From positions 1-64,000 of IMG/VR virus record IMGVR_UViG_3300023313_000001: DNA of 64,000 nucleotides; one strand, written 5' to 3'. The notes below the pieces were generated by a model. It searched no databases and was not told where the DNA came from. It saw only the letters and a list, made by a program, of their open reading frames with translations. Positions 50,718 through 51,005 of this stretch are shown piece by piece. The position numbers and the translations under genes are program-made. Position 1 is the stretch's first letter; every line of letters begins with the position of its first letter.

Positions 50718-50972
50718 TTCGTTGAAAGTTATTGGATGGTCTGCAAGACATGGGTTCGAATCCCATCACCTCCACCAAATTCTGCTCAACTCCACCTATG
50801 TGTTTTAATATTTGGGGGTGAATTGGTATCGATTGGGATAATAAGGTAACTGGAGAATTGTGTAGATTCACATAAAAAATCAAATAAACTAACTGCAAAC
50901 GATAATTTTTTTGCTACTGCTATCGCAGCGTAATTGCTCGAACAGCTGGGTGTAACTACCTGGAAACAGAAC
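50718..50972 (+). ncRNA. ssrA: circularly permuted (two-piece) tmRNA; tag ANDNFFATAIAA*
   Basis: Acceptor piece ends GACATGGGTTCGAATCCCATCACCTCCACCA (50777), 36-nt spacer, coding piece starts GGGGGTG (50814) with G3:U70; resume codon GCA at 50895, stop at 50931-33. Confidence 0.9.
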
Positions 50973-50974
50973 AG

Positions 50975-51005
50975 AAAAAAGAGAGGCTTTTTGCCTCTCT
51001 TTTTT
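50975..51005 (+). terminator. Rho-independent terminator after tmRNA
   Basis: AAAAAAGAGAGGC-TTTTT-GCCTCTCTTTTTT. Confidence 0.85.

Follow-up and report, generated by a model that had tools for sequence, protein, structure and literature searches.

A circularly permuted, two-piece transfer-messenger RNA gene carried by an uncultivated jumbo myovirus related to XacN1

The first 64 kb of the IMG/VR virus record IMGVR_UViG_3300023313_000001 (64,000 nucleotides, referred to here as the window, with all coordinates given on this whole stretch) contain a gene for transfer-messenger RNA (tmRNA) in which the acceptor end precedes the part that encodes the peptide tag. This region is a genuine ssrA gene in circularly permuted form, the agreement of its features lying far beyond chance. 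A preliminary description of the window had named it as a phage-encoded, circularly permuted two-piece tmRNA, which is borne out by the agreement between ARAGORN and the Rfam model RF04321 and by the recovery of every element that had been listed. The full explanation that we consider best, and hold to be highly probable, is that of a phage-borne permuted ssrA gene which serves host-dependent ribosome rescue and which represents a divergent member of a beta-like viral pool of such genes. The gene is a further example of the known class of phage two-piece tmRNAs and not a new permutation.

Gene anatomy and structural support

ARAGORN reports a permuted tmRNA at positions 50682-51024 on the + strand, with a tag identical to ANDNFFATAIAA, and the Rfam model RF04321 (tmRNA_permuted) matches positions 50717-50933 of the same strand with 114.6 bits (cut-off 47, E value 1.3e-21). 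ARAGORN and Rfam, the latter including its alpha, beta and cyano models, had been named in the preliminary description as the means of verification, and their outcome is this permuted tmRNA call. Direct reading of the sequence gives the same order: the CCA end at 50777 lies upstream of the GGGGGTG that begins with G1 at 50814, the two being separated by a 36-nt spacer exactly as described before. Permuted gene order and a score above the gathering cut-off are thereby found together.

The tRNA-like domain is complete, consisting of a 7-bp acceptor stem, a T arm, a discriminator A and an encoded CCA (Table 1), and the alanine identity pair G3:U70 is present by direct reading, being formed by the G at 50816 and the T at 50771. 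The tag frame comprises 12 codons, is preceded by the resume context TAACT and opens on the resume codon GCA without a start codon, to finish in a hydrophobic end followed by a stop codon. The coding piece is closed by an intrinsic terminator, the stem of which (GAGAGGC/GCCTCTC, 50981-50999) is followed by a T run to 51005; this is the sole terminator-like site in the region 50300-51200, for which shuffled sequences give 0.4. The identity pair, the TAACT-GCA context, the intact tag and the terminator had all been proposed at the outset, and each of them is confirmed by direct reading.

Upstream of the tag, the coding piece carries a candidate for the first pseudoknot (PK1), the hairpin of which is part of the RF04321 model and covaries in relatives; its second stem, GATT (50865-50868) with AATC (50878-50881), would comprise 3-4 bp that are conserved without covariation. 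Downstream of the tag, the segment at 50946-50971 is plausibly a reduced second pseudoknot (PK2), a suggestion that derives from its conservation, likewise without covariation. The 5' end of the acceptor piece (50717) is taken from the start of the Rfam model. The coding piece had been characterized as very compact, which holds in comparison with bacterial genes but not among viral two-piece tmRNAs, where its size is ordinary, the gene of phage RsoM2USA being shorter over an equal model span.

Comparative analysis supports the fold. With no structure supplied, RNAalifold found the T arm, the inner P2 helix and, bridging the spacer, the acceptor stem in an alignment of 25 viral permuted tmRNAs (the window included); 12 of 18 pairs have compensatory changes, and G3:U70 is invariant in all 25 of the aligned viral homologues. 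In the Rfam alignments, the window, XacN1 and RsoM2USA differ by more compensatory changes, which fall in the outer P2 helix and the hairpin ahead of the tag. The tmRNA fold did not emerge from minimum-free-energy folding or from co-folding of the two pieces, and the comparative structure was used instead. The Logan contigs of a DNA run that is possibly the source sample, a microbial mat metagenome, give a word depth of about 160x with no variant.

Among homologues the length of the spacer varies between 8 and about 150 nt, often with a hairpin fold. The spacer of the window holds a second CTCCACC (50790-50796), 20 nt downstream of the first; this heptamer is the one that immediately precedes the final A of the acceptor strand. 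This second copy is absent from the spacers of relatives, many of which form a neat hairpin; it could be a chance occurrence, a duplication relic or a processing signal.

Table 1. Coordinates of the permuted tmRNA gene and of the features surrounding it in the window
Feature	Position	Strand	Description and basis
Promoter candidate, sigma-70-like	50414-50442	+	TTGAAT, 17 nt, TATAGT; upstream of tRNA-Cys
tRNA-Cys (GCA)	50454-50529	+	Directly upstream of the tmRNA gene; ARAGORN, Rfam tRNA 45.7 bits
41-codon open reading frame (ORF)	50580-50705	+	Hydrophobic peptide; strong AGGAGA ribosome-binding site 4 nt upstream; sequence reading
Acceptor piece	50717-50777	+	P2 3' strands (50717-50746), T arm, acceptor 3' strand, discriminator, CCA; reading, Rfam, RNAalifold
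T arm	50750-50766	+	Stems ATGGG/CCCAT, loop TTCGAAT; sequence reading
Acceptor 3' strand	50767-50773	+	CACCTCC; sequence reading
Discriminator and encoded CCA	50774; 50775-50777	+	A, then CCA; sequence reading
Spacer between pieces	50778-50813	+	36 nt; removal in processing expected; sequence reading
Coding piece, 5' part	50814-50858	+	Acceptor 5' strand, D-loop analogue, P2 5' strands; reading, Rfam, RNAalifold
Acceptor 5' strand	50814-50820	+	GGGGGTG, G1 = 50814; pairs 7/7 with CACCTCC
D-loop analogue	50821-50832	+	AATTGGTATCGA; within coding piece 5' part
P2 helices, 5' strands	50833-50858	+	Within coding piece 5' part
PK1 candidate	50859-50881	+	Hairpin TGTG/CACA (50859-50862 with 50869-50872) and GATT:AATC
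Tag frame	50895-50933	+	Resume codon GCA 50895-50897, tag ANDNFFATAIAA, TAA 50931-50933; reading, ARAGORN, Rfam
3' domain	50946-50971	+	Putative fold: hairpin CTGGGTG/TACCTGG, then AAACAGAA; includes AACAGAA
Intrinsic terminator	50975-51005	.	Symmetric, A run and T run; ends coding piece
GroES	51094-51399	+	Directly past the tmRNA terminator; Pfam Cpn10 3.5e-19
Peptidyl-tRNA hydrolase, PTH2 type (PF01981)	51396-51770	+	Pfam PTH2 1e-29

Relationship to other two-piece tmRNAs

The preliminary description had implied that the gene is novel and had raised the possibility of an independent permutation, neither of which is upheld. A survey from 2022, in which Table S1 gives the XacN1 gene as 'Permuted', listed 53 two-piece tmRNAs among 18,146 phage genomes (PMC9004378), the tmRNA database holds 79 phage sequences (PMC11915505), and huge phages have been reported with tmRNAs and SmpB (PMC7162821). 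Moreover, the same form of the gene is found in eight related jumbo phages, at least 118 IMG/VR stretches match the permuted-order pattern, and the gene of the window aligns over its full length to the existing beta and alpha models.

Three of the eight relatives are cultivated, namely XacN1, in which the terminal repeat holds two copies (RF04321 123 bits), RsoM2USA (96.7 bits) and Xoo-sp13 (65.7 bits), and the anatomy and tags of their copies were checked; an RF04321 search of CM1 and Atu_ph07 returned no permuted tmRNA. The remaining five are uncultivated and correspond to IMG/VR records (G001-G004 and G009), fetched via their permuted tmRNA, which are related jumbo phages of 99-235 kb, 26-66% complete, with a baseplate wedge protein that is 36-48% identical; topoisomerase II is 52-56% identical in the loci of G001 and G002 and in a separate contig (L071). 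With the phage of the window included, the group thus has nine known carriers of a permuted tmRNA. A search for related loci by the baseplate wedge protein gave three short contigs only.

The copies in XacN1, Xoo-sp13 and RsoM2USA resemble that of the window in their permuted order, canonical T loop, G3:U70 pair, AN...AA tags (ANANTFDYALAA, ANDSRYAVAA; this start and end being common to the relatives) and in the lack of a phage SmpB. They differ in the length of the spacer (14, about 125 and about 149 nt, versus 36 in the window) and in exceeding the beta cut-off (92-108 bits; Xoo-sp13 passes no clan model), below which the window gene remains with 77.1 bits. The position of the window gene also differs from that of the XacN1 copy, which is part of the terminal repeat, with tRNAs around it and a GOLLD RNA beside it. 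This GOLLD RNA (RF02032, 227 bits; L024:4071-4484) is situated about 1 kb downstream of the XacN1 tmRNA; neither the window nor 140 kb of the remainder of its record yielded GOLLD or any Rfam family beyond tRNAs and tmRNA. At the nucleotide level the best match of the tmRNA is that of RsoM2USA (67-69% identity over about 200 nt) and there is no close relative; searches with the tmRNA and its surrounding 12 kb against 50,697 phage records gave no match. The tmRNA gene is not annotated in the GenBank records of XacN1, RsoM2USA and Xoo-sp13, nor in the XacN1 paper.

Among phages of other groups, the marine T4-like phages (Melnitz, pelagimyophages and cyanomyophages; PMC9004378) likewise carry a permuted ssrA in a T4-like genome, yet they constitute a different group from the open ocean, whereas the window phage comes from a microbial mat; they differ further in that the Rfam scan found no glutamine riboswitch or other Rfam family overlapping the window tmRNA. 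The one-piece tmRNAs of mycobacteriophage cluster C, Streptomyces phages and phage G are also phage ssrA genes with a presumed role in supporting translation during infection, but they have the standard gene order, and the window scores only 26 bits on the corresponding model RF00023 (cut-off 47), through its acceptor half only.

The thresholded Rfam scan labels the window gene alpha_tmRNA (RF01849, 71.4 bits, above the cut-off of 50), and the beta model RF01850, when run alone, aligns to positions 50663-51003 from end to end of the model with 77.1 bits. The alpha label is therefore a cut-off artefact, because the beta model scores higher and nevertheless stays under its own cut-off of 84. The cyano model RF01851 reaches 47.2 bits, short of its cut-off of 70. 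When 12 viral homologues were scanned, ten scored best with beta (92-141 bits), one (L087) scored best with alpha, and Xoo-sp13 matched no clan model.

For an alpha reference, a bacterial genome was reached via a protein hit and 151 genomes of its phylum were then sampled, of which 37 hold high-scoring permuted genes (113-162 bits with RF04321). A GGCRGTA-type T loop together with a AGGATCGAC-type D-loop analogue was present in all 28 readable alpha-type bacterial genes, and the alpha model gave 224-299 bits for the three such genes that were scored. At these places the window reads TTCGAAT and GGTATCGAT; it is therefore not an alpha-type gene, lacking the signature of the alphaproteobacterial (Caulobacter-type, RF01849) lineage in spite of its likeness to it in permuted order, AACAGAA motif and the tag start ANDNF. 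In the same phylum sample, 12 low-scoring RF04321 hits were considered as permuted genes and rejected, being standard tmRNAs. Such false hits (50-68 bits, cut-off 47) fall on the 5' half of ordinary one-piece tmRNAs (L191-L202, genomes G189-G302); since RF04321 matches one-piece tmRNAs above its cut-off, low-scoring 'permuted' calls need a check of gene order.

To the betaproteobacterial RF01850 type the window is similar in its canonical T loop, in a D-loop analogue of the kind GGTNTCGA, in the hairpin ahead of the tag and in a 3' hairpin with the CCTNG..AC..AA motif; it is distinguished from that type by being AU-rich and shorter and by having GGTATCGAT in place of GGTTTCGAC. The AAUCAA block ahead of the resume codon is common to the window and the beta-like viral consensus. 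The AACAGAA motif past the tag, which aligns to the alpha model at high posterior probability, is present in 32 of the 85 permuted tmRNAs from viruses or metagenomes, versus 3% of shuffles. On these sequence comparisons, the window gene is best placed in the beta-like viral two-piece group, as a divergent and AU-rich member that has a canonical T loop; this beta-like pool is common in T4-like and jumbo phages.

The GGTATCGA form of the D-loop analogue, which is that of the window, was seen in 18 of 80 fetched viral loci and in a single one of 185,579 bacterial species genomes (one contig of an Acidobacteriaceae metagenome-assembled genome). A longer signature common to the window and RsoM2USA, GGTATCGATTGG, had no match in these 185,579 genomes and was retrieved from three viral contigs, all of them short, and from nine contigs of marine metagenomes.

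The carrier phage, its host and the surrounding genes

The virus record is linear, 229.5 kb in length and 65% complete according to CheckV. It encodes, by PHROGs matches, the large subunit of topoisomerase II, a T4-type baseplate wedge, ribonucleotide reductase and an NAD-dependent ligase, and holds 19 tRNAs and one tmRNA. Judged by the wedge protein, the cultivated phages nearest to it are the Xanthomonas phages Xoo-sp13 (51% identity) and XacN1 (49%), the Stenotrophomonas phages CM1 and RAS14 (49%) and the Ralstonia phage RsoM2USA (46%). The carrier is an uncultivated jumbo myovirus related to XacN1, with T4-like replication and baseplate genes.

The enzymes of the phage had been thought to look gammaproteobacterial, which is supported for the one host-like enzyme tested, oligopeptidase A: its best named hits are only Gammaproteobacteria (46-48% identity), and at the phylum level its nearest clusters are Pseudomonadota. 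In a sample of 151 evenly drawn genomes of the gammaproteobacterial class there was one permuted hit, and no genome had a permuted gene as its only tmRNA. The genome with that hit (G116) has a standard tmRNA of 229 bits as well as an alpha-like permuted tmRNA with the tag ANFDYPSKQAA (L160, G116:C167; G116:C576:1025-1396); the permuted copy is probably phage-borne or mis-binned, because it is located on a short contig by a tRNA-Met and the standard tmRNA on another contig. Xanthomonas and Ralstonia, on which the relatives are cultured, use one-piece tmRNA. Given this and the gammaproteobacterial affinity, a mismatch between phage and host in the form of their tmRNA is likely. Such a mismatch is not new: the tmRNA of the OM43 phage Melnitz has been placed, in published work, in a different lineage from that of the host (PMC9004378).

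The genes that flank the tmRNA are listed in Table 1. The weak candidate promoter could drive a joint precursor of tRNA-Cys, the small ORF and the tmRNA; in this region four promoter-like sites were found, against 4.2 expected from shuffles. The 41-codon ORF, the peptide of which has no Pfam match, sets the earliest plausible 5' limit for the functional part of the tmRNA precursor. Farther upstream are genes for a YqeY-like protein and phosphoribosyl-pyrophosphate (PRPP) synthetase, and past GroES and the peptidyl-tRNA hydrolase follow a staphylococcal-nuclease homologue, MazG and PhoH, phoH being 4.6 kb downstream of the tmRNA. XacN1 has genes for peptidyl-tRNA hydrolase and GroES too, at other places in its genome. 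Many viral contigs have the permuted tmRNA within a few kb of phoH and of a PD-(D/E)XK nuclease gene that is homologous to the one at 90377-91072 of the phage's own genome (IMG/VR loci L037, L057, L061, L068, L069, L073, L083, L095, L106 and L109), and this recurrent proximity suggests an old common neighbourhood among T4-like phages.

Several features elsewhere in the record are noted here. A tRNA of the amber-suppressor type (anticodon CTA, called 'Pyl' by ARAGORN) is present at positions 640-717 (+) of the window, in two copies in XacN1 (L024:1548-1706) and also in Xoo-sp13 (L026:592-667). Stop-codon recoding, which this tRNA brought into consideration, was ruled out by a coding density of 93% under code 11; of the 277 ORFs, 55 end in TAG, with read-through lengths that resemble those of the other stop codons. 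A tRNA-Met call at 29437-29525 is 89 nt long and scores 32.4 bits on the Rfam tRNA model (cut-off 29), with an insertion or degeneracy being possible. Two HNH/homing-endonuclease genes of about 600 amino acids each occur in the phage's own genome at 65493-67301 (L002:1493-3301) and 106922-108814 (L004:2922-4814), one of which overlaps the topoisomerase II large-subunit gene from immediately upstream. A giant ORF of 2,702 codons (own genome 123247-131355, - strand) adjoins the baseplate wedge gene and is the positional homologue of very long ORFs in XacN1, Xoo-sp13 and RsoM2USA.

Proposed function, alternative explanations and implications

No SmpB gene was found in the record of the window, in two IMG/VR records of related phages, or in XacN1, RsoM2USA and Xoo-sp13, whose genomes are complete, and the RNA would therefore have to use the SmpB of the host. 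The mechanism proposed here follows established knowledge of two-piece tmRNAs (review PMC3985003). A single precursor would be transcribed, possibly jointly with tRNA-Cys, and would be cut by host RNase P at G1 and trimmed by 3' processing enzymes to the encoded CCA, leaving two pieces that the 7-bp acceptor stem and the P2 helices would hold together. Following alanine charging by the host alanyl-tRNA synthetase via G3:U70, host SmpB and EF-Tu would bring the RNA to ribosomes stalled on broken mRNAs, where translation would resume at GCA and add (A)ANDNFFATAIAA, freeing the ribosome and marking the product for host proteases. The phage would probably benefit by keeping ribosomes available while host and phage nucleases create non-stop mRNAs, and the tmRNA may act jointly with the 19 tRNAs of the phage and with the peptidyl-tRNA hydrolase encoded next to it. 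The presence of this hydrolase fits a joint role in keeping ribosomes and tRNAs free, and a work on a physiological link between tmRNA and Pth is among the references of the same review (PMC3985003). Literature searches on the function of phage-encoded tmRNA, or on jumbo phages with trans-translation, returned nothing.

A number of points weigh against this explanation. The only RNA run of the sample, which is tiny, has no reads on the stretch. The pseudoknots are short, AU-rich and without covariation support, and the tag ends in IAA, the usual end being LAA. The gene does not formally qualify for the beta sub-lineage, as its score on RF01850 lies below the cut-off. A tree built by maximum likelihood from 70 viral tRNA-like-domain segments was for the most part poorly resolved, and joint monophyly with the copies of RsoM2USA and XacN1 was neither shown nor rejected (approximately unbiased test, p 0.118). 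With the record 65% complete, this particular phage may have an SmpB gene in the remaining part, and compatibility of the RNA with host SmpB, alanyl-tRNA synthetase and proteases is assumed.

Among the alternatives, a recent capture from a host that has its own two-piece tmRNA (an alphaproteobacterium, a cyanobacterium or a member of a two-piece beta lineage), so that the form of the phage gene mirrors that of its host, is considered improbable. It would agree with the origin of the sample in a microbial mat, where such two-piece bacteria are assumed to be able to live, with the alpha_tmRNA label of the thresholded scan, and with the start of the tag, ANDNF, which resembles alphaproteobacterial tags. 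Yet the alpha signature present in 28 of 28 bacterial genes is absent here and the alpha score is 71 bits as opposed to 224-299, the cyano score is below its cut-off (47 bits, cut-off 70), GGTATCGATTGG is found in none of the 185,579 species genomes and the looser GGTATCGA in one, and eight related phages carry the gene, three of them with cultured hosts of the one-piece kind. That the gene arose by a new, independent permutation of a one-piece gammaproteobacterial tmRNA within the phage lineage is very unlikely: the gammaproteobacterial-like enzyme and the 0 of 151 class genomes with a permuted gene as sole tmRNA speak for it only indirectly, and are opposed by the end-to-end alignment with existing two-piece models, by the break position, AAUCAA block and AACAGAA motif common to other viral two-piece genes, by the match of the one-piece model to the acceptor half alone, and by the presence of the form in the related phages and viral stretches counted above.

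It is also distinctly improbable that the RNA acts as a competitor or modulator of host trans-translation, or as a counter-defence that evades tmRNA-targeting nucleases of the host or of rivals. A possible resistance to host RNases or toxins had been suggested initially. In favour of a competing or counter-defence role is the tmRNA-like RNA of phage DS6A, which has no tag frame and inhibits endogenous tmRNA in E. coli (PMC11915505), and the occurrence of GGTATCGA in 18 of 80 viral loci versus one of the bacterial species genomes could follow from a virus-specific adaptation. Against it, the tag frame (with the usual AN start and AA end, as among relatives), G3:U70 and CCA are all intact, no link to a nuclease or toxin was found, and the viral enrichment is not quantified, bacterial matches to the general pattern being uncounted. 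Finally, the gene might be non-functional, as a chance match, as a remnant with tRNA-like features or as a fragment of a host tmRNA duplicated at an attachment site; the second CTCCACC of the spacer and the false RF04321 hits on one-piece tmRNAs (50-68 bits, 5' half) might be taken to indicate this. Such a reading is extremely unlikely, as the match of 114.6 bits covers both halves in permuted order and comes with a tag frame and a terminator, covariation supports the fold, and both halves are complete, unlike in an attachment-site fragment.

Beyond the explanation favoured here, of a phage-borne gene from the beta-like viral pool, it may be speculated that XacN1-like jumbo phages and other T4-like phages maintain a long-lived two-piece tmRNA lineage of their own, circulating among phages of one-piece hosts. 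Its proposed marks are the canonical T loop and the GGUAUCGA variant of the D-loop analogue, which is frequent in viral contigs and present in one of 185,579 bacterial species genomes; we regard this idea as tentative and, on balance, unlikely. If it were true, a virus-adapted ribosome-rescue RNA would be implied, and the viral lineage could be the source, and not a derivative, of the bacterial 'beta' two-piece lineage.

The window gene leaves knowledge of how tmRNA permutation arose unchanged, and is one more well-formed case among the increasing number of two-piece tmRNAs known from phages. A practical warning comes with it, in that the thresholded clan competition of Rfam mislabels it as alphaproteobacterial. 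The gene recurs in the XacN1-like group of jumbo phages, where it is unannotated in public records, which makes the present finding useful for annotation, and XacN1 on Xanthomonas and RsoM2USA on Ralstonia are candidate cultivable systems in which to study what a phage gains from its own tmRNA.

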